Below are positions 45,980 through 59,723 of a stretch of 64,000 nucleotides of DNA, in pieces. The DNA lies in assembly GCA_029953675.1 (NCBI GenBank), contig JAMWBK010000004.1, positions 248,001 to 312,000 of the forward strand, written 5' to 3'. A program made the position numbers and the translations under genes. The stretch is from Rhodosorus marinus CCMP1338 (Eukaryota; Plantae; Rhodophyta). The stretch's first letter is position 1, and the number at the start of each line of letters is the position of its first letter. The notes under the pieces were generated by a model. It was not told where the DNA came from, ran no database searches, and saw nothing but the letters and a program-made list of their open reading frames with translations.

Positions 45980-48900
45980 CTAAATGACGAGATCCAGCTC
46001 CGGCCGCCCGTAAACGTTTCCGGTCTCCTTATCATCGGGTATTCTTGGATACGCAGGTGAGAGTCCATCTTGCGAGTAGACATACAGGTTGTTGTAAATC
46101 TTCCAGTAAATCTCTCTCACGTGACGAGCCGGATGGAAAAGGCCCTGAAGGACGTAGGACAGGATTACCCTGGACCCAATGCGACCATAATTCCCTGTCA
46201 CAAGCAGTGAAGAACGTCGACACGTCAGCAATCTAGCAGATCCCTGACCCTTTCCTGGTGGCTTACCTGAATCGCGGACATCACCGCATTGATAACGTGG
46301 GGAGATGTTTCGAAAATATTCGGCCACACGTGATTCAGCAAATGAAGCAAAGCATCTTCACAACCGAGTCCCTGAACGCCAAGCGCTAAATGCCCCAGCG
46401 CTGAACATGCTGTCTGCCGATGAACAAGATCCCTGTCAATGAGTGCATCCTCTAACAACGGCGTCACAGCGTAGATGTAGTCCTTTGACGTTTCTCCAAT
46501 ATATTCGCAGAGGAAAGAAAGGGACTTGAGCACGCCATTCTGCACATTCAGCTCCGGGATCCGGTACTCGTTCATCAACGCCGGAAGTACGGTAAACGGC
46601 TGGCAAGTTTCCGCAACGATTGCAATTGCAACTGTTGTGCAGACTCGTTGCTGTCGCTCCTGTACTTTCAGGTTGTTAAGCAGCGTAGCCAGGACATCTG
46701 ACGGACCAATGGCCTTGGCGATGTAGCCGAATGTGCTCACTGCAGCTCTCCGAATTGCCTGCAGAAGAACGAGAACGGTCAACACAGATTGAGCAAATGT
46801 CTCGAGTAACGATGCGAGCGTTACAAATGGCCTACCTTCTTCGGAGCTTTCAAGAGTTCCAAAAGCTCGAAACAGATTCTCATCCATTCCCGAGAAGATA
46901 CATACTCCGCTCCCCTATCAGCGATTCGTCCTACCAAATCAATGCAGTTCTCTTGTACCTTCTCCTGCCTATTCTTCAGGATAGGTGTGAGTCTCGGAAG
47001 TAGGTCTTGAATTGGAGGGGTCATCTTTGCAATTCCAATCACGTTTACGATCGCTTTCAACCCGCCAAGAATGGAACCGAGCACATCTGGGTACTCTTCT
47101 CCAAGGTACTCGTAAAGCACGACACCTGCGTCAAAGAAAAGCAAGAAATTAATCCGTTAGATCACGTTTCCACTGCACTCTGCATCGAAGGGCTGTGACT
47201 ATCAGCCGAGCGCTTACCTAAATGCCCCATAAGAACCTCCTCGTCGCACTTCTTCATGACAGGCATGATCTTGGAGACAAGATCAGCTGCTTGTTGTCGA
47301 ACCTTGGCAGATTTGTTGTTCAATCTCCACTTAATAATCGAAGCCAGCTGTTGGAGATACGGTTTCGCCCGCAAACCCAGGGCGTTGATAAGCGTGCCAA
47401 GGCCGTTCAAGACGACAGGATTTTCATCAGAGCCTTGCTCTTGGAAGGCGAAAAGAATGCCATCAATAAGCCTTTCCTCCAGTTTCTGGTCGATGTCTGA
47501 AACCCCCAAGTCGTCTACAATCTTTTCGATTGTTTCCATGACCATCCTTCGGTAGGGTTCAGCTTCATCCTTCAGATCGTCCACAAGTCGTGTCATTATG
47601 TCCGGGCCGCCAACTTTGTTGGCCAGTTCCACGCTGGTCTCGACGAGTTGGCGATAGTTCCTGCGTCCCGAAAAAGGGAATCGCAAGTACACAGGTTAGA
47701 AGTTTGTATCTGGGTAAGCTAAACGGGCGCTGTGCACTCACCTCCTGTCCAGAGCCATTCGACGAACCCAAAAGCACCGAAAGAACTCGGGTAGAATCTC
47801 TGTCCTCACATAGCCAGCTTCTACTCCTTCGCATTGTACGCACTGCTTCACGACTTTCAGCACGATCTTCTTCATTTCATCATCGGGACTCTGGAACTCT
47901 CTGATCAGGATAACCATTACTTCCTTGGTGTAGTAGGACGCGTACTCAGCGTCCATGAGTGGTATGATGAAGCCGATAGCTTTCAGAAACGCCACAAGGG
48001 TTTTCCCGCGGTGCTGTCGGATGCCCTTCCACAGCGGTTTCAATATTGAGTCGAAGGACTCAATTCCATAGGGTGACGCCGCCTCAGCGAGCGCGGCTAG
48101 GGCAAGCGCACAGATCGTCCTGACCTTGCCCTGTTCATCACTCAGGCCATTTTCAATGATCTGCACGAGATTCCTTAAGTGAGGCAGCACCGCGCAACCC
48201 TAAGTGTGAAAAGAACCAGTTAGCAGCGGTTACACGTTTCGTGCGATCATCATCATTGCTATTATAAGAATGTCTCGAGTTACCATAAGAATTGCAATTT
48301 GCTGGACGATTTTAGTTCCCGTGTGTCTTGCCTGCCAGCTCTTCTTGCTCTTGCAAACGGCCTTCAAGAAAGGCAACAGAGCGGGGATACCCAAAGCCGA
48401 TGCAACCACTGCGAACGCTCTGGCGGTTGTGTTCCTCACATACTCATCGGGATTGTCAATGTCTGGCCTCATTGTGGCGATCATCGTTGCCAAACCAGCT
48501 GCCTTGGATAGGTTTGAAATAATTTCGCGTCCTTCCACTCTCGCGTAGTAGTTCTCGTCAATCAGCAGCGGCTCTATCGGAACTAGAATTTTGTGCACGT
48601 AAGGACGAACAAGATCGTCCAATTTGTACAAAACTCTGTCAATCACCTTCACCAGGAGATGCCTCTCATGATCCTCAAGCGTTGGGCTCATGAGTAAGGG
48701 TAGAATTTGATTTATCAGGGGGCCTGCTCCAAACTCCCTCGCCTTGTCCGTCAGGTGCCTCAGTGCTGCTTTCCTCATTGGCGGCGTGCCGTTCTTAACT
48801 CGCAGGAGAAGCCTTAGGATTCGCCTCTCCTTCTGCTCATCGGATGAAAGGGTCGATTCATCCGCATCCTTGAGGATTTTCGAAAAGGTTTGATAATCAT

Positions 48901-50189
48901 CTGGCTTCATGGAAATCCCCTGAAGTGATTCCGGTAATTCAGGAATGTCCAAGCCATCCTTCTGCAGGCTCCCCTCCTCGCCCAAAATTCGGAACTCGGG
49001 CGTTTGGGACGGGGTTGGGGTGGCCATCAGCTTCCGAGCTGGAGTCCGGATAGCCTGATAACCAGTTGGTGGATCCAGAACAATGTAGCCCTCGCTAGGA
49101 ACAAGCTGGTCAAGTTCGTCGTCTGTGAGTGGCCTATTCCTCTCATCCACTTCCATCTGCCATCTCATCGTATGATAGGCTTCCGGAGTCATGGATGGGT
49201 TCATGGGCGTCTGCATACCGTCGAAAGCGGCCGGTGTTTGCGCGGCTCCCATTCCCATCTGCGGTGTAGCACCCATGTCAACAGCTCCCGGAGCAGCAGG
49301 GGTCATGTCCCAGCGCGACTTTTTCCCGCTTGAAACATCTGGCGTTTGATCCCATCGTGAGCCCGAGGCAATGCTTCCCTCTGAGCCGCTGACGGCGCTC
49401 ATTGTCGGCGTATCTTCCACGTCCCATCTCTTTCTTCGCGGTGTTGTTCCTGCCTGATCCCATCGTGAGCCTGCTTTTGGGGTCTCAGCTACTCCATTGG
49501 CTTGCGAAGACTCTGGCGCCGGTGTTGGCTCTGCCACGTCCCACCTAGTCAAGTCAGAAAAGAAGGAAGGGATAGTGGATAAAAGTTAGCATGAGGACAA
49601 GGCAATCCCTCATTAAGCACAACTGGACACCCTACCTCCTTCTCTTCCTCTCGGGTTTGCTCTGAGTTGATGGTTTAATAGTTGATTCATCAATCTGGGG
49701 AGGAAGAGGAACAGTTGCAATTCCGTTCTCCCCTTCCTCCTCCTTCTTCTTCGCAATGGCCTTTTGCATTTCAATTTGTTCATTCTCGAGCATTCTCTCC
49801 CTCATAACATCCGCATATGATGCTCCATCCCTTCCACTTGCTGCCAAGCTATCCGCAGGCAAGACCCTATTGCGCCGTCGGGCATGGTAATCATCTTCTC
49901 GTTCCGCTATGGATTTTACTCGTGTGTCCTTGAACGGATCGTCATCCCGAGAAGCCATCGCCGCCTCGTCGAGCAATTCCTTCGGTGCGGTGAACGAATT
50001 CACCAAGCTCGTCGGAGCAGGCACCGCGGAAACTTCCGCTCCATCCACGGGCAATTCCGTCACATAATTGTTGTGCTTCCCCCTCCCGTTCCCTCCGTAG
50101 AGATCCGCATCATATCCACCCGTCGACCCAAACGCAGCACGCTCCTCCTGTAGCCGCTTAATCTCACTCTCATCCTCCTCCTCGCCCAT
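45980..50189 (-). CDS. SF3B1: Splicing factor 3B subunit 1 (full length; apparent 1-bp frameshift at 46168-46170)
   Basis: RWD/TP repeats, [62 protein letters not shown] repeats to ELDLVI*. Confidence 0.97.
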
Positions 50190-53800: not shown

Positions 53801-55019
53801 TCATCGCTTCGAATCGACCACTTCCGACATCCCTTCCAGATCCTTGAAGGACGCTGTGGCTGATCCTCTCCTCAACGGTTGAGGCTGGGAGTCAGCATAC
53901 TTCCAACCAAGCATGTAAATGATCTGAAACGTCGCTATGATGCCTCCATCCTCAGATCCAAACTTCTCCTTGTATATTTCATCAGCACGCTTGAATGCTC
54001 GGTTTCCAAAGTAGGTCCTATCAAACTCCCGTAGATAGTCTCACTTAGTTCCAAGCGGAGCACTGTCCTGTCATCTTCGCTCGGCTTACCTTCGCTTGAT
54101 CAGAGCGTTATTCTCTCCCATTCCTTTCAAATGTCTCATGAGCGAGAAGATGTCTCTGAACTCCACTTGGATGTCTTCTATATCGATTGTTGTTAGAACA
54201 AACCCGCCACGACCAAGCACACTTCCGGCGTCTCGTAGGCGTACGAAGGGGCTTATGTGGTTGCTAAGTCCGCTCCATATTTCCTCTTCAGCAAGCTGCA
54301 TTGAAATTCTAAGCTCGCTTAGAGTGTCACCTGAGGTGACGAGGAAGCGCTCTGCTGTGAGCACTTGTGATTGAGACGTTCTCTTGTGGGTGTGAGTCGC
54401 CAAAAAAAACTCACCGCCAAACATCGATCCAACGAAAAGTCCGTCTGGTCTCAAAATGTTGTTGATCTGAACCATTGAACCTGGGAGATCGTTTACCCAG
54501 TGGAGAGCTAGAGACGAGATTACCAGGTCAAATTCTTCCTTCTTGAAAGGGATCTTTTCCTCGTCGACGACGTCGAAGGCCTTCTGGTGCACACCCTCCT
54601 CGTCGCACCGGCGCTTAGCTGCGTCGATGATAGGGCCAGCTTGATCAACTTGGAGAAGGCTACGAACCTTATCCTTCTGCAGCAGCTTCTTCGCAGCGAT
54701 ACTTACGTGAGCTCGTCCGCATCCGAGATCCAGGGCACGTGTGAAGTTTCGGTTTACGTCCTACAAGAACAACCTCGCATCAGATATCTGTATCTTATTC
54801 TCCGAAGCGCCCACAAGTGAGCTTGCAGCCTACCTCAAGTCTGTCCATAACACGCTCGGCTACCTCATCTCTAAGATAGTCGAACTTGCTTGCTCCGTCT
54901 GCGCTCGCGGAAAGAACTTTATGCCATCTCTTCGCGTCGCGATCGAATACGACCACTGACATTCCACGCCTCGAGGATGCATTTTTCTTTAATCCTCTAA
55001 AAATCAAGCCATACCGCAT
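53801..55019 (-). CDS. NDUFAF5: Complex I assembly factor NDUFAF5 (SAM methyltransferase fold), multi-exon
   Basis: [84 protein letters not shown]. Confidence 0.94.
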
Positions 55020-55380
55020 AGTGAGTAAGGAGAGATCTCAAACCTGTCCGATCCCAAGATGTTCGTTCAGAATCCATCCGCCTTAGCAAGAGCCATTCTC
55101 CGAAGTCGATCTCAATCCTTTTCAGTCAGTCACCGAGAGTTGATTGAAGGCGAATTAGTTTCAGAGGGATCTTGGGAATGGATGGTGTATCTCGGAACGT
55201 GATTGACAGACGTAGTGAGTAAGGGGAGCTCCAACCTGTTGGGTTCCGAGATGTTCGCTCAGAATTCATCCGCCTGAGCAGATTCGTTCCTAGTCTGAGA
55301 TTCAATCCTTTTCACAAACCCGTTGATCACGGATCGACGGTGGTTATTTCAGACGGGTCGGAAAAGGCTGGTGCTTTTGA
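55020..55380. repeat. Diverged tandem duplication, 2 x ~194 bp, upstream of NDUFAF5
   Basis: GTGAGTAAGG.GAG..C.AACCTGT....AGATGTTCG.TCAGAAT.CATCCGCC...TCAATCCTTTTCA at 55021 and 55215. Confidence 0.85.
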
Positions 55381-56104
55381 GAAGCCAGGACGTCATTGAG
55401 AGACTATAGACCAGCAAAATTTGTCTTCGAAAGCCCTGAAAAGACTTTGACAATGATCTCAAAGACGACTCCTGAGCTCGTGGTTGTTCACATCGTGCCG
55501 GCTAAGCATTTTCCAGGGTGAGCAATCGGATATGACTTCATCTAGTATGGACAAACGAGGAACGTTAAAGCCTTCCAGCACCATCGTACATTCCCACAAC
55601 CCAAGCGCTAGGAGTCATTGGCAACAGTGGCATCAAGGCTGAGGACCAGCTCACTACAAATTGGTTCCTAACCCACTCAATCGCTTCGATTGCCCCTTCA
55701 TTGCTTGGAAAGGTATCATGAGAACTCTCACAATCATCTAAACAGCCACCAGAAGAGGCAAGGAGACGTTAGTCAAGGACTACTACCCCACCCAGGCTCG
55801 AAGCTATAAGGACGCGGGTTCGAAGACCCATGGACAAAGACGATAGAGATCCGAGCTCACTTACAAAGACGAGGTCTTCCGATAAGATCTTCGTAGAAAG
55901 GGCCGCGAATACCGTCGACAAGGATGAACCGATCTCCGCGATAAGTTGGAGCCCACCGCTCTAGGATAAGAAAACTTGTTGAGGAGGTTTGCGCTTGCCT
56001 CCTCGGGGGAGCTGATAGAGGAAACTCTTTTCCTTCTTGACCGAACAATGTGCACTTCTGCTCTTGATAATCGCGGAGTTGGATTCGTTTGCGGGGGTTG
56101 GAGG

Positions 56105-57756
56105 ATGGTGGAGGGACACCAAGTGCATCGCGTGGCGATTTCGCACCGAAAGCGGCTTCTGAACAGCGTGGTAGGGGCGAGCTCGCCCAACGGAAAGTTC
56201 GCGGACGGTGCGTCGGCGATCAGCGGGAAGACGCTGGCTAGAATCGAAGCGCACGGAAAGAACCTGTTCTATTTCTTCGGAAACGATGAGAAACCTCGCT
56301 CCGACTTGGTCGTGGTTCACATCCACTTCGGGATGTCCGGCAGGTTCACCCTCTTCAATGCCCCTGGTCCTGAGCCGGGGGCCAACGTCAGACTTAAACT
56401 TACCAGCAGCAATACGGAAGCGTACCTGAGCTCAATGATCTGCCAGCATGGAGGTCTCGAGCTGTACGACGAGAAAGTGAACAAGTTGGGTGAAGATCCG
56501 CTTCGAGAAGACGCTATGAGCGAGCGATTCTGGGAGAAAATTCAGTCCTCGAAGAAGTCTATTGGGCTGATGCTCATGGACCAGACTGCAATCGCAGGCG
56601 TAGGGAACATTTACCGCGCCGAAATTCTCTTTCGCGCCGGAATACATCCAGAACAGCCTTCACACACTCTCTCGCGTGAACAGTTTGAACGCGTTTGGCG
56701 TGAGAGCGTGCTGCTCCTTCAACGAGGAGTGAAGACGGGGTCTATACTAACCGTCGACCCAGCAGAAAACTTACCAGAGCCCTGGAAACGACGCTACATA
56801 TACAACCATAGCGAATGTCCACGCTGTCATGGCGTTGTAAGTCGTGTTTGTTTCGCCTTTTTTCTACTAGAACACGTTCTAACCTCTTCGGGCTTCCCGT
56901 TTCTTGTCCTTAGATACGTTCCTGGGAGATCTCAAAGCGACGAGCATACGCTTGTGAAACGTGCCAACCTCTAGACCCTCACGTGGTCAACTCAGACCGC
57001 AAAATTGCCCTACGGAAGAGCTCCAAGCACGAGAGCTTCAATAGCCACTGTGCACCGGAGCCGGGAGCTGCGAAGACGGTCGCTGAACTTCGTCAAGCTC
57101 TGAAATCTGCCGGCTTGGCGATGTCCGGGAGCAAGACTCAGCTTGTGGAGCGACTCAAAGCCACTGAAGGCAAGGAGGAAGTTTGGCTGATCGATTCCGA
57201 GGCTAATAACGATGAAACCGAGACTTTCGGTGACACTAGGAGAACGACAGTCGCGCAGCTCAGAGCAGCGTTGCGTGAGAGAGGACTTCAAATCCAAGGC
57301 ACTCGGTCTGATCTCCTAGCAAGGCTCGAGCAGAATACTGTGGTGATCAAGAGGGATGCAGTGCCAGAGGAGAGTGTCGTTTCCAGGACTGATCGCTCAA
57401 CGCAAGCTGATGAGTTCGTCGACCTGGAAGGCAAGAAGGTCTCGGAGCTGAGAGATCAGCTGGCTTCTCTTGATCAACCGACGACCGGGAAGAAAGCCGA
57501 GCTTGTTGCACGCCTTAAGGCATATCTCGGACATCCCGCAGAAGAGGCTGAAGAATCAATAGAGGTACGCCCAGGAACAGCGCACCTAGGGGAGATTCGT
57601 GACACGTGGGATGCCGCCATGGATAAGAAACGAGCCGGCGAATCGGCAGCCGTCGAACACGTCGGGATGATTGATATGGGTGCGGAAGTCAAGGACACAT
57701 CGCAACAAAAAATCCCGTTCAGAAAGAGGAAGCGGAGATCGACTCGCAGCAAGTGA
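56105..57756 (+). CDS. Fpg/Nei-family DNA glycosylase (MVEG start, H2TH, Zn finger) fused to three SAP domains and an NLS; 1 intron 56837-56913
   Basis: MVEGHQVHRVA, HGKNLF, IHFGMSG, LMDQTAIAGVGNIYRAEILFRAGIHP; splicing restores CPRCHGV|IRSWEISKRRAYACETCQP; three SAP motifs follow; FRKRKRR at the C-terminus. Confidence 0.9.
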
Positions 57757-57968: not shown

Positions 57969-59723
57969 TCATGCTGTCCTCGACAAAGTCGGCCGTCTCT
58001 GGTCGGATTCAGTGGCTTGCTTCTTCCGGGCGAATGGATTGCGCAAACCTCCCGGTCGCTTCACAGGATCTGCCTTCTGGCTGGGGTCCTCTTTCTTAAC
58101 CACAGGAGTATAGTTCGGTACTATCTGCCGAGACGCTATAGGCGAACCGGCGACGCGCTTATGGTCCAGGCTTGGAGGAGTCATTGACATCTGCGAGTCG
58201 CCTGATAACGGGGAATCCGTGCTGTGCGTACTAGGCAGATCATAGGATTCCTCGCCTGTCCACTTGCTCCTCGCATCCGACCCAAACGGATTAAGCGTTC
58301 CGTCAAATGCTTCAAAGTCGTTTTCAAAAACCCGCGTGAGCTTAGGCCGACCTCCACCTCGTTTCCTTCCGAAAAGACCTTTGCCGGACGTTTTCGCAGC
58401 GGTTCCTCCAACGGCGTCCTCTTTGGAAGGAGATTCTGTTGTTTCCCGTGAAGGGGAGTATCCTTGAGAGACTACCGTCGACGAGGAAACCGGGTCAATA
58501 ACAGGATCTGTTGGGTTAGTGCCTTTCACCAGCGTGGACGGGGCCATGACATCCTTCGATGGGCTCGGATTGTCGTGTTTCAGGGATGTTCGCACGGCCG
58601 TTGGTGTAGCTCCGCGCTTCCAAGGGTCTCCGCGTCTGTAGACTGGTAACACGTCCACCCGAGGAGGTTCCTTCGTAGTCAGGCTTCCTTGGTTCCCAGC
58701 TGAAGCAGGTGTGGGCTGGACCTGAGCACCGGCCGTGTTCTGCGCTCTGTCCGTAGGCCCTCCGTCTGGCAACCTCGTTATTTCGCTGAAAGTTTCTTCG
58801 TCCAAGGGGTTTCTCTTAGGAACAACAGGCATATGGCCGCCAACCGTGACTCCGGAAGTTCCGTATTCTTCGGAGGGTAGCATGACTCTCGGAGCCACGT
58901 GCCTCGCCCTCTGGCTTTTCGAAGCAGGTCCCTCCGAATTGGAATCGCTGTTGACAGTTCTATTCGGAGCTGCGTGGGCTGGAATGTACGTTGCAGATTG
59001 TTTCAATGCGACTAGACCACTCGGCTCCCTGTCCTCGGCGCTTTTTATTCCCTTTGAGGCTTCCTTGATTTGATCAGCTACGGCGTCATAGTCATCTACA
59101 GAAGCGACTAATGCCCGCGCGAGTGACTCCAAGCTAATGTCCCTGCTTTGAAGGGATCCCGCTGACAGTTCAGCGACTATGGGCTCAACGAGTTCTGCAG
59201 CGTCCAGAGACCATCCGCATACACGGAGCGTTGACGGATGGGCCTGAAGTACACGTGGGGTGGTGATCCCCGGAATTGGCACATCAAAATACGAGAACCG
59301 CGCCGTAGAAATTCTACTGTTTAACCCGCCAAAGTCCCATGGACCGGTTCTCCCAGCACCCACAGCCCCGCGTCTCTGCTTCTGTCCAAAGAACGCCTCA
59401 AAATCAATCCCTTCGCTGGGCGGCTGGGGTCCATTTCCAGTCTCTGGATCCGGATCTGGTTTCCAACTATCCTCATTGTACTGTTCCAGACCCTCGCCTC
59501 TCTTACCGCCGAAATAACTATTGGCGGCCCTCTCAACGCGTAAAGACTCGACCGTGCCGCTCACCCCCTTCCGCACCCGACAACGAAACTCGCTCTTCAC
59601 CCGCTGAGCCACCGTCGTGTACTCCTTCGCGTACGGGTCATACCTCTCCGAAAACGGTGAAGGCTTCAACTCAAGCCCATCAAACCGGCGACGAGGTCGC
59701 GACTCCTTCACCTTCCTCAACAT
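57969..59723 (-). CDS. Hypothetical 584-aa Ser/Pro/Thr-rich protein
   Basis: Long stop-free ORF between AT-rich flanks; no domain recognised; upstream exon possible. Confidence 0.7.
   Translation of the reverse strand: MLRKVKESRPRRRFDGLELKPSPFSERYDPYAKEYTTVAQRVKSEFRCRVRKGVSGTVESLRVERAANSYFGGKRGEGLEQYNEDSWKPDPDPETGNGPQPPSEGIDFEAFFGQKQRRGAVGAGRTGPWDFGGLNSRISTARFSYFDVPIPGITTPRVLQAHPSTLRVCGWSLDAAELVEPIVAELSAGSLQSRDISLESLARALVASVDDYDAVADQIKEASKGIKSAEDREPSGLVALKQSATYIPAHAAPNRTVNSDSNSEGPASKSQRARHVAPRVMLPSEEYGTSGVTVGGHMPVVPKRNPLDEETFSEITRLPDGGPTDRAQNTAGAQVQPTPASAGNQGSLTTKEPPRVDVLPVYRRGDPWKRGATPTAVRTSLKHDNPSPSKDVMAPSTLVKGTNPTDPVIDPVSSSTVVSQGYSPSRETTESPSKEDAVGGTAAKTSGKGLFGRKRGGGRPKLTRVFENDFEAFDGTLNPFGSDARSKWTGEESYDLPSTHSTDSPLSGDSQMSMTPPSLDHKRVAGSPIASRQIVPNYTPVVKKEDPSQKADPVKRPGGLRNPFARKKQATESDQRRPTLSRTA

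Follow-up and report, generated by a model that had tools for sequence, protein, structure and literature searches.

A gene in the 64-kb window analysed here (that is, the whole stretch of DNA), which derives from the nuclear DNA of the red alga Rhodosorus marinus, is very probably that species' orthologue of a eukaryote-wide and uncharacterised branch of the Fpg/Nei (H2TH) DNA glycosylase/AP (apurinic/apyrimidinic) lyases. Its spliced open reading frame (ORF) of 524 amino acids (aa) starts with MVEGH at the ATG at 56105. The product combines a Nei-type H2TH glycosylase with valine at the nucleophile position, a bacterial-style zinc finger with four cysteines, three SAP domains and a basic tail. 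This combination in a single gene had been proposed in an earlier reading of the DNA made without database searches (the sequence-only reading), and it is borne out by domain matches, alignment, an AlphaFold2 model, Foldseek comparison and a spliced transcript; every motif quoted in that reading is in place in the spliced ORF, with the SAP strings at aa 299-325, 356-382 and 420-446 and RKRKRR at aa 514-519. Along its entire length, the translation agrees at 100% identity with GenBank KAJ8905484.1 (hypothetical protein NDN08_001991, Rhodosorus marinus), whose locus sits on contig JAMWBK010000004.1 (3.19 Mb) and whose model has its start at 56105 as well.

The catalytic core is recognised by the Pfam models H2TH (94.9 bits against a cut-off of 34.7, E=3e-27) and Fapy_DNA_glyco (E=1.5e-8), matches that are far beyond chance. 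The Pfam model zf-FPG_IleRS does not score on the 524-aa protein. In HMMER alignments, the four cysteines of the finger (C238-P-R-C241-x16-C258-E-T-C261-Q), together with R253 and Q262, align column by column with the Fpg finger of solved structures, and AlphaFold2 builds the beta-hairpin of the finger from strands 244-250 and 253-258. Among 61 aligned homologues, M1, V2, E3, G4, H5, K52, M77, R229/R230 and C261/Q262 are invariant, and C238, C241, R253 and C258 are at least 90% conserved. The AlphaFold2 model, computed with a 61-sequence alignment, has a mean pLDDT of 83.6 and a pTM of 0.73; pLDDT is mostly above 90 in the core (aa 1-290) and falls below 50 in the linkers at 332-353, 389-406 and 499-514. 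Foldseek comparison with the PDB returned only Fpg, Nei, MvNei1 and mycobacterial Nei2 (target-normalised TM 0.73-0.85; 0.77-0.85, at probability 1.00, for Fpg, Nei and Nei2). The sequence and fold hallmarks of the Fpg/Nei superfamily are all found in the protein: M1-V2-E3, with its non-canonical valine, K52, the H2TH domain, the four-cysteine finger with its arginine, and the predicted two-domain fold. When the three Rhodosorus strains are compared with one another, substitutions in exon 1 fall at third codon positions in 45/55, 37/49 and 59/73 cases. This bias indicates strong purifying selection, and the enzyme is therefore presumably active.

The exon structure can be followed in transcript assemblies of two further Rhodosorus strains (L085, the second strain, and L084, the third), which were found via the 90% cluster of an MMETSP homologue. 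In L085, exactly 77 nucleotides (nt) are absent, and the sequence reads ...CATGGCGT directly followed by ATACG..., so that the 56836/56914 junction predicted in the sequence-only reading is seen exactly. Because this spliced transcript crosses the junction, the SAP half belongs to the same gene. The contrary possibility, which the sequence-only reading had itself raised, is that the SAP-bearing half is a separate gene, and a prokaryote-style gene caller did divide L084 into a 255-aa Nei ORF and a 262-aa SAP ORF. That split, however, arose because such a caller was applied to an unspliced molecule: the intron, its GT..AG ends conserved, is still present in L084. L085 and the MMETSP ORF P0002 both cross the junction as one ORF, the same fusion recurs in 108/120 homologues, and an unspliced reading leaves the zinc finger without its second CxxC. 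The probability left to a separate gene is negligible. In the intron-retaining L084 contig (about 105-1773, with an intron of 77-78 nt), the ORF ends in ...CHGIVSRFRATCFSI and a stop, losing half the zinc finger and all of the SAP domains; the retention could reflect pre-mRNA, contaminating genomic DNA or a regulated event.

The SAP block is equally well defined. Pfam SAP (PF02037) matches in three stretches (93.2 bits against a cut-off of 23.9, E=5.5e-27), and each SAP domain is a helix pair in the AlphaFold2 model, the helices mostly reaching a block pLDDT of 84-95. At E<1e-5, 525 proteins were retrieved in the protein search, and homologue counts here use the best 120 of these (all E<=1.5e-91), in which SAP/HeH-like copies were counted with an iterated SAP hidden Markov model (HMM). 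No copy was found in 12 proteins, one in 75, two in 29 and three in 4, and Nei is joined to SAP/HeH-like modules in all of the remaining 108. Named homologues come from red algae (Rhodosorus, Porphyridium), green algae (Coccomyxa, Trebouxia, Chlamydomonas eustigma, Picochlorum, Chloropicon, Ulva, Tetraselmis, Prasinoderma and others), diatoms, a pelagophyte and the choanoflagellate Monosiga brevicollis. The Nei-SAP architecture is standard in a large eukaryotic clade, and the rarity implied by the sequence-only reading does not stand. That reading had named an architecture already common and described in algae as a refutation, and half of this applies: the architecture is common in the databases, but no description of an algal Nei-SAP family was found in searchable full-text literature, and the clade is apparently widespread but undescribed; a 2018 paper allows for 'some protists' (PMC6264785).

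Among the parts of the protein, only the triple SAP is unusual, being confined to two Rhodosorus proteins and two unrelated metagenomic proteins. A relative with 48% identity (P0003) has two SAP domains, so the middle one was acquired recently, within the Rhodosorus lineage. In Rhodosorus the gene is an ordinary orthologue, and only the third SAP copy is lineage-specific. Ku70 is a similar case of a repair protein fused to a SAP helix-extended-helix DNA tether, and the plant AP-endonuclease ARP and plant PARP2 are further SAP-bearing repair proteins. The catalytic modules of such proteins differ from the one found here, and three SAP domains on a glycosylase are rare even in the Nei-SAP family (4/120).

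Two further conserved elements, which the sequence-only reading had missed, flank the SAP domains. FxSHCAPE lies about 25 residues past the finger; F286, S288, C290 and A291 are invariant in the 61 aligned homologues, and the motif is absent from the shorter bacterial relatives. The C-terminal motif, with the consensus PGTxHL..SAxxAAx(E/D)KxxAGExxxVEH(V/I) at aa 464-494, is present in 111/120 homologues, and A478, K482, A485-G-E487 and V491-E-H493 are at least 90% conserved. Neither motif matched Pfam at E up to 10. In the Rhodosorus model, pLDDT over aa 461-490 of the C-terminal motif is 95/88/79, whereas in a Chloropicon protein in which the motif directly follows the core (P0074) it is only 54-64. 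In homologues of this Chloropicon type, FxSHCAPE and the C-terminal motif are contiguous and the SAP domains come after them, whereas elsewhere SAP domains separate the two. In most lineages, therefore, the SAP domains look as though they had been inserted between two pieces of a single unit. The last 20 residues contain at least five K/R in 79/120 homologues, and the green alga Chloropicon primus has a near-identical tail (...FRKRKRRQ); this basic tail is a probable nuclear localisation signal. Two homologues carry additional domains: a Coccomyxa elongata protein of 867 aa has a protein kinase domain in addition to Nei-SAP, and a transcriptome protein of 605 aa joins Nei to a WGR domain. These (P0016 and P0046) may be mergers of gene models or real fusions.

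The residue at the nucleophile position separates the eukaryotic proteins from their bacterial relatives. M-V-E-G-H is found in 110/110 eukaryotic homologues with an intact N-terminus, and proline in none. When bacterial and archaeal species were scanned with one genome each, the nearest prokaryotic relatives proved to belong to Planctomycetota, Actinomycetota and a few other bacteria, and to share 36-42% of residues with the query across aa 1-262 (E=1e-50 to 1e-63). Among the best 80 of these, all 79 with a recovered N-terminus read xPEGH, with lengths of 261-306 aa, in keeping with the earlier remark that an MxEGH start is typical of actinobacterial Nei. When core domains of 45 eukaryotic and 45 bacterial proteins were placed in a neighbour-joining tree, eukaryotes and bacteria fell into separate groups in 100/100 bootstraps; distances averaged 0.56 among eukaryotes, 0.73 among bacteria and 1.18 from one group to the other. 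The discriminating positions, given from bacteria to eukaryotes, are P2V, Q29N, H53N, L75F, L77M, G110A, V169I and R213S, with V23F less clear-cut; position 77 is the Fpg-type wedge position. Judged from these sequences, the eukaryotic clade is the sister of bacterial xPEGH Nei and not a member of it; valine at the nucleophile is fixed across the clade, and the exchange from proline was probably gained after the split.

The bacterial xPEGH endonuclease VIII of the mycobacterial Nei1 group is the closest known system by sequence and the source of the algal proteins' name; names such as 'Endonuclease 8 1' and 'DNA-(apurinic or apyrimidinic site) lyase' were assigned automatically in the databases. 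Its mycobacterial member Rv2464c (Endonuclease 8 1, Nei1) is called nei2 in the literature (PMC2734929). The bacterial group and the eukaryotic clade have in common x-x-EGH-x-x-HR, SP(N/Q)GRF, GK(N/H)LF, LGxDPLRxDA, GxGNxYRxE and CxxC-x16-CxxCQ. Where the bacterial proteins have Pro2, L77 and 'DLRGP', however, the Rhodosorus protein has Val2, M77 and 'LSAMT', and the bacterial proteins lack FxSHCAPE, the SAP domains, the C-terminal motif and the basic tail. Bacterial Fpg/MutM and Escherichia coli Nei (1PM5, 6TC6, 1K3W) resemble the Rhodosorus protein in their two-domain fold (TM 0.77-0.84), in E3, K52 and the arginine positions of the zinc finger, and in the Fpg-like 'HxGMSG' wedge methionine. 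They differ in having Pro2, identity is only about 20-24%, and the Rhodosorus protein does not preserve the Arg/Phe pair of the Fpg 'DPRxFG' loop. Plant and fungal Fpg (AtFPG/MMH, PDB 3TWK) are also eukaryotic H2TH glycosylases found in photosynthetic lineages, but with 3TWK only the H2TH segment aligns (query aa 125-210; E=7e-9 for the single sequence, 1.4e-11 for the profile). The plant enzyme has Pro2 and no SAP domain, and is not known to have a zinc finger. Membership of this group was rejected, given the lack of full-length similarity and the presence of the four-cysteine finger in the Rhodosorus protein.

The bacterial affinities raise the question of origin. The sequence-only reading suggested a possible horizontal origin, and this holds in the sense that the ancestry of the family as a whole is bacterial (xPEGH Nei) and ancient; it does not hold for the Rhodosorus gene. 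A recent transfer from a bacterium to Rhodosorus would fit the bacterial nature of the nearest non-eukaryotic relatives and the bacterial style of the finger. It is at odds with the spliceosomal intron, with a gene G+C of 0.53 that is inside the local range of 0.43-0.55, with orthologues in Porphyridium, green algae, diatoms, pelagophytes and Monosiga, and with the monophyly of the eukaryotic clade, whose members are about half as distant from one another as from bacteria. A scan of IMG/VR viral contigs with the family alignment recovered no relatives from giant viruses or other viruses. Recent transfer into Rhodosorus was rejected on the strength of the intron, the ordinary composition, the eukaryotic orthologues and the monophyly, and is extremely improbable.

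Another explanation for the valine is that the protein is an algal orthologue of animal NEIL3 and that the residue descends from a common ancestor. Among characterised Fpg/Nei enzymes, only NEIL3 has a valine nucleophile at its N-terminus, exposed by removal of Met1 (PMC9737245, PMC11323726). Val2, the four-cysteine finger and long C-terminal appendages, DNA-binding in NEIL3, are common to both, and the Arg/Phe pair of the Fpg loop is unconserved in both HMMER alignments to Fpg, which is similar to the loss of two void-filling residues in NEIL3. However, the N-terminus here is VEGH, as in the bacterial xPEGH clade, whereas that of NEIL3 is VEGP, and the identity of the bacterial xPEGH proteins to the query, given above, also argues against orthology. 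Affinity to NEIL3 was judged by profile scores against PDB chains. NEIL3 chains reach 57-60 bits with the eukaryotic profile and 60-61 bits with the bacterial xPEGH profile, whereas between the bacterial and the eukaryotic profile Fpg drops from 121 to 92-96 bits, Nei from 119 to 65 and mycobacterial Nei2 from 105 to 49. These drops indicate that the eukaryotic clade is a derived offshoot, and the equal scores of NEIL3 on both profiles indicate no special NEIL3 affinity and point to convergence. The appendages also differ: NEIL3 carries RanBP-type and tandem GRF zinc fingers (PMC9737245), neither of which was detected in the Rhodosorus protein (Pfam scan, E up to 0.1), which has three SAP domains instead. 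Orthology with NEIL3 is thus very unlikely, and the valine is probably convergent.

The N-terminus itself presents a further choice. The in-frame ATG at 56048, pointed out in the sequence-only reading as adding 19 aa, is present in the window, which has no further ATG between 56048 and 56105. The upstream ATG and its open frame are kept in three Rhodosorus strains, with leader peptides MCTSALDNRGVGFVCGGWR in the window, MCTSALDNRQTGFVCGAWR in L085 and MLASAPHRSQIGFVRGGWR in L084, and the ATG is inside both transcripts, 336 nt from the 5' end of L085 and 47 nt from that of L084. The contig of P0003 starts 1 nt before the ATG and is uninformative on an upstream start. The 57 nt of the leader have no indel or stop in the three strains, and differences number 2-3 in the 27 nt of the 3' half and 3-11 in the 30 nt before them. 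Substitutions fall at third codon positions in just 1/6, 2/13 and 3/13 cases, however, and divergence is 11-23%, against 7-10% in exon 1. Because the leader is free of stops in a second frame too in all three strains, the open frame is uninformative there, and the fast divergence without third-position bias gives no evidence of purifying selection on the leader peptide. Just upstream of 56048 there are indels between strains, including 1-nt and 9-nt gaps in the DNA alignment. In the second strain, 13 extra in-frame residues (GGRRRSTSSFFAR) precede the leader (L085 about 265-336, against window 55976-56047).

Extensions before the methionine are common in the family. They occur in 50/110 homologue models (about 45%), and those of at least 20 aa are poor in acidic residues (2.5% D+E, where the enzyme domain has 10.6%) and have 20% S+T. 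Among related species, peptide motifs such as FSKSPTKM, RQQIRM and FRRSNLVM recur directly before the methionine, and leaders of the diatom type have a hydrophobic, signal-peptide-like stretch followed by SAF/ASAF, which we take to be a complex-plastid presequence signature. The residue before the methionine is R/K in 26/48 and the one preceding it I/L/V in 37/48, a pattern that fits an Arg-2 site cutting between Met and Val and equally fits a purine at -3 of an internal (Kozak) start. The invariant methionine is kept in 50/50 extended models, as would be expected if it still served as a start. Whether a protein has a leader is unrelated to whether it has a basic tail (33/14 against 38/16, odds ratio about 1; 33 proteins have both). 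Separate organellar paralogues, with leaders and without basic tails, were considered and rejected for want of any such association. The octapeptide R-10 mitochondrial motif was also tried; it fits a Picochlorum-like subgroup (R-x-F-S-K-S-P-T-K-M followed by V) but not Rhodosorus, in which the arginine is two residues further out.

From the upstream ATG, the sequence-only reading derived an organelle-targeted or masked form. The conserved ATG and frame, their inclusion in transcripts and the leaders of many homologues speak for this, but the 19 codons themselves evolve as if unconstrained. It may be that translation from 56048 yields a long form whose 19-residue mitochondrial or plastid presequence is cleaved after Met20, regenerating the valine, while 56105 yields a nuclear form. 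Such dual nuclear and organellar isoforms are plausible, would complement the reading of the gene as a Nei-SAP orthologue, and would account for the family-wide extensions, their composition, the diatom-type signatures and the retained methionine; dual targeting also predicts the free co-occurrence of leader and tail, and the leader of the third strain has no acidic residue. On the other hand, the Rhodosorus leader is just 19 aa long and has Asp in 2/3 strains, its substitution pattern and second open frame are those described above, and many homologue extensions come from gene callers that prefer the longest ORF. Isoforms of this kind are a possibility that we would put below an even chance. 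Alternatively, the upstream ATG could be a feature of the 5' untranslated region (UTR), with functional enzyme made only from 56105 by leaky scanning or from a downstream transcription start; a product from 56048, if made, would be N-terminally blocked and catalytically masked, damping output. The neutral-looking substitutions, the UTR-like indels just upstream, the GenBank start and the stronger context of 56105 (A at -3, G at +4) than of 56048 (A at -3, T at +4) agree with this, whereas the absence of indels and stops from the 57 nt, the much better conservation of their 3' part and the recurrence of targeting-like leaders across the family do not. This second account comes not far short of an even chance, and in Rhodosorus a dual isoform and a bypassed 5'-UTR ATG are about equally likely.

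For the enzyme that starts at 56105, we infer the chemistry, substrate class, DNA tethering and nuclear import as follows. Translation and the action of methionine aminopeptidase would expose Val2, a requirement for which NEIL3, whose N-terminal valine nucleophile likewise needs Met1 removal, is the precedent (PMC9737245, PMC11323726). The free alpha-amino group of Val2 would attack C1' of a flipped-out damaged nucleotide and form a Schiff base, with Glu3 as the acid, K52 and the zinc-finger R253 holding the flanking phosphates and M77 as the wedge. Base release would then be followed by beta-elimination, possibly weak. The three SAP modules, on flexible linkers, would tether the enzyme non-specifically to DNA or chromatin, and the C-terminal basic cluster would serve nuclear import.

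Some points weigh against the assignment as a Nei-SAP orthologue of this kind. In the transcripts, the in-frame ATG at 56048 precedes the 56105 start by 57 nt and has a fair context (A at -3), and a start there would block the catalytic N-terminus unless it were skipped or the product processed. The argument for convergence with NEIL3 is drawn from profile scores and not from a rooted phylogeny with NEIL1-3. The NCBIfam equivalogs for Fpg (113 against a cut-off of 212), Nei (70 against 252) and Nei2 (also far below) all miss their cut-offs, so the substrate class is not transferable.

A wider reading, which as a whole is doubtful, would join these elements. The MVEGH Nei-SAP clade would be a second, independent valine-nucleophile Fpg/Nei, the NEIL3 analogue of algae and some protists, with weak lyase activity and with single-stranded, fork or crosslinked DNA as its substrates. 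Two in-frame starts would give two isoforms, and the invariant methionine would double as the nuclear start and as position -1 of an organellar processing site, with both routes giving the catalytic valine. FxSHCAPE and AGExxxVEHV would fold together onto the core, and the SAP domains would be a tether inserted as a loop.

Table 1. Features of the Rhodosorus marinus Nei-SAP gene, in window coordinates
Feature	Position	Strand	Description
Upstream in-frame ATG and 19 codons	56048-56104	+	MCTSALDNRGVGFVCGGWR; alternative start or part of the 5' UTR
Exon 1	56105-56836	+	aa 1-244; MVEGH N-terminus, K52, wedge M77, H2TH, first CxxC
K52	56258-56260	+	in the invariant G-K-N-L-F motif
H2TH	56486-56743	+	aa 128-213; Pfam E=3e-27
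First CxxC	56816-56827	+	C238/C241; aligned to the Fpg zinc finger
Intron	56837-56913	+	spliceosomal, 77 nt, GT-AG (GTAAGT...CCTTAG); splits the zinc finger
Exon 2	56914-57756	+	aa 245-524 and TGA; second half of the finger, post-finger extension, three SAP, C-terminal motif, basic tail
Second CxxC	56953-56967	+	C258-E-T-C261-Q262; Fpg-finger alignment, conserved in homologues; R253 just upstream
FxSHCAPE motif	57037-57060	+	F286-N-S-H-C-A-P-E293; clade-specific
SAP 1	57076-57174	+	aa 299-331; Pfam SAP; own SAP HMM at 299-326, E=7.5e-12; two helices in AlphaFold2, block pLDDT 88-93
SAP 2	57244-57345	+	aa 355-388; Pfam, own HMM, AlphaFold2; copy missing in the 48%-identical relative P0003
SAP 3	57421-57528	+	aa 414-449; best Pfam SAP stretch; own HMM, AlphaFold2
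C-terminal motif	57565-57675	+	aa 462-498, VRPGTAHLGEIRDTWDAAMDKKRAGESAAVEHVGMID; conserved in the family
Basic tail	57718-57753	+	FRKRKRRSTRSK; probable nuclear localisation signal

On its 5' side, the glycosylase gene neighbours a divergent methyltransferase gene (53801-54962, minus strand). The two share the 1.1-kb region between them (54963-56104), which is probably a bidirectional promoter; should the 5' UTR extend that far, it would include an out-of-frame upstream ORF of 6 codons that starts at 55924. On the 3' side, a convergent ORF of 584 aa, rich in Ser, Pro and Gly and without a Pfam match, occupies 57969-59723 on the minus strand and is kept as 586 aa in the second strain (L085 2131-3891, minus strand). 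Its stop is only 212 nt from that of the glycosylase, and the presence of both genes on one assembled L085 contig suggests that their 3' ends overlap. An SF3b1 gene lies further away, at about 46105-50189 on the minus strand. A tRNA scan of the 64-kb window found no tRNA genes, and an Rfam scan found no families at the gathering score.

The significance of the gene lies at the level of the clade, in its invariant valine nucleophile, two unexplained conserved motifs and a recurrent N-terminal leader. A 2024 paper still calls NEIL3 'an exception' to the rule of the N-terminal proline (PMC11323726), and a large, tightly conserved clade with invariant Val2 contradicts the view of NEIL3 as the lone exception. 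The leaders pose a question of cell biology, namely how a targeting peptide could stand in front of an enzyme that uses its own N-terminus as active site. The Nei-SAP clade is also a natural replicate for the effect of a valine nucleophile on Fpg/Nei chemistry and, since NEIL3 is difficult to express, its microbial orthologues may be easier proteins with which to work.

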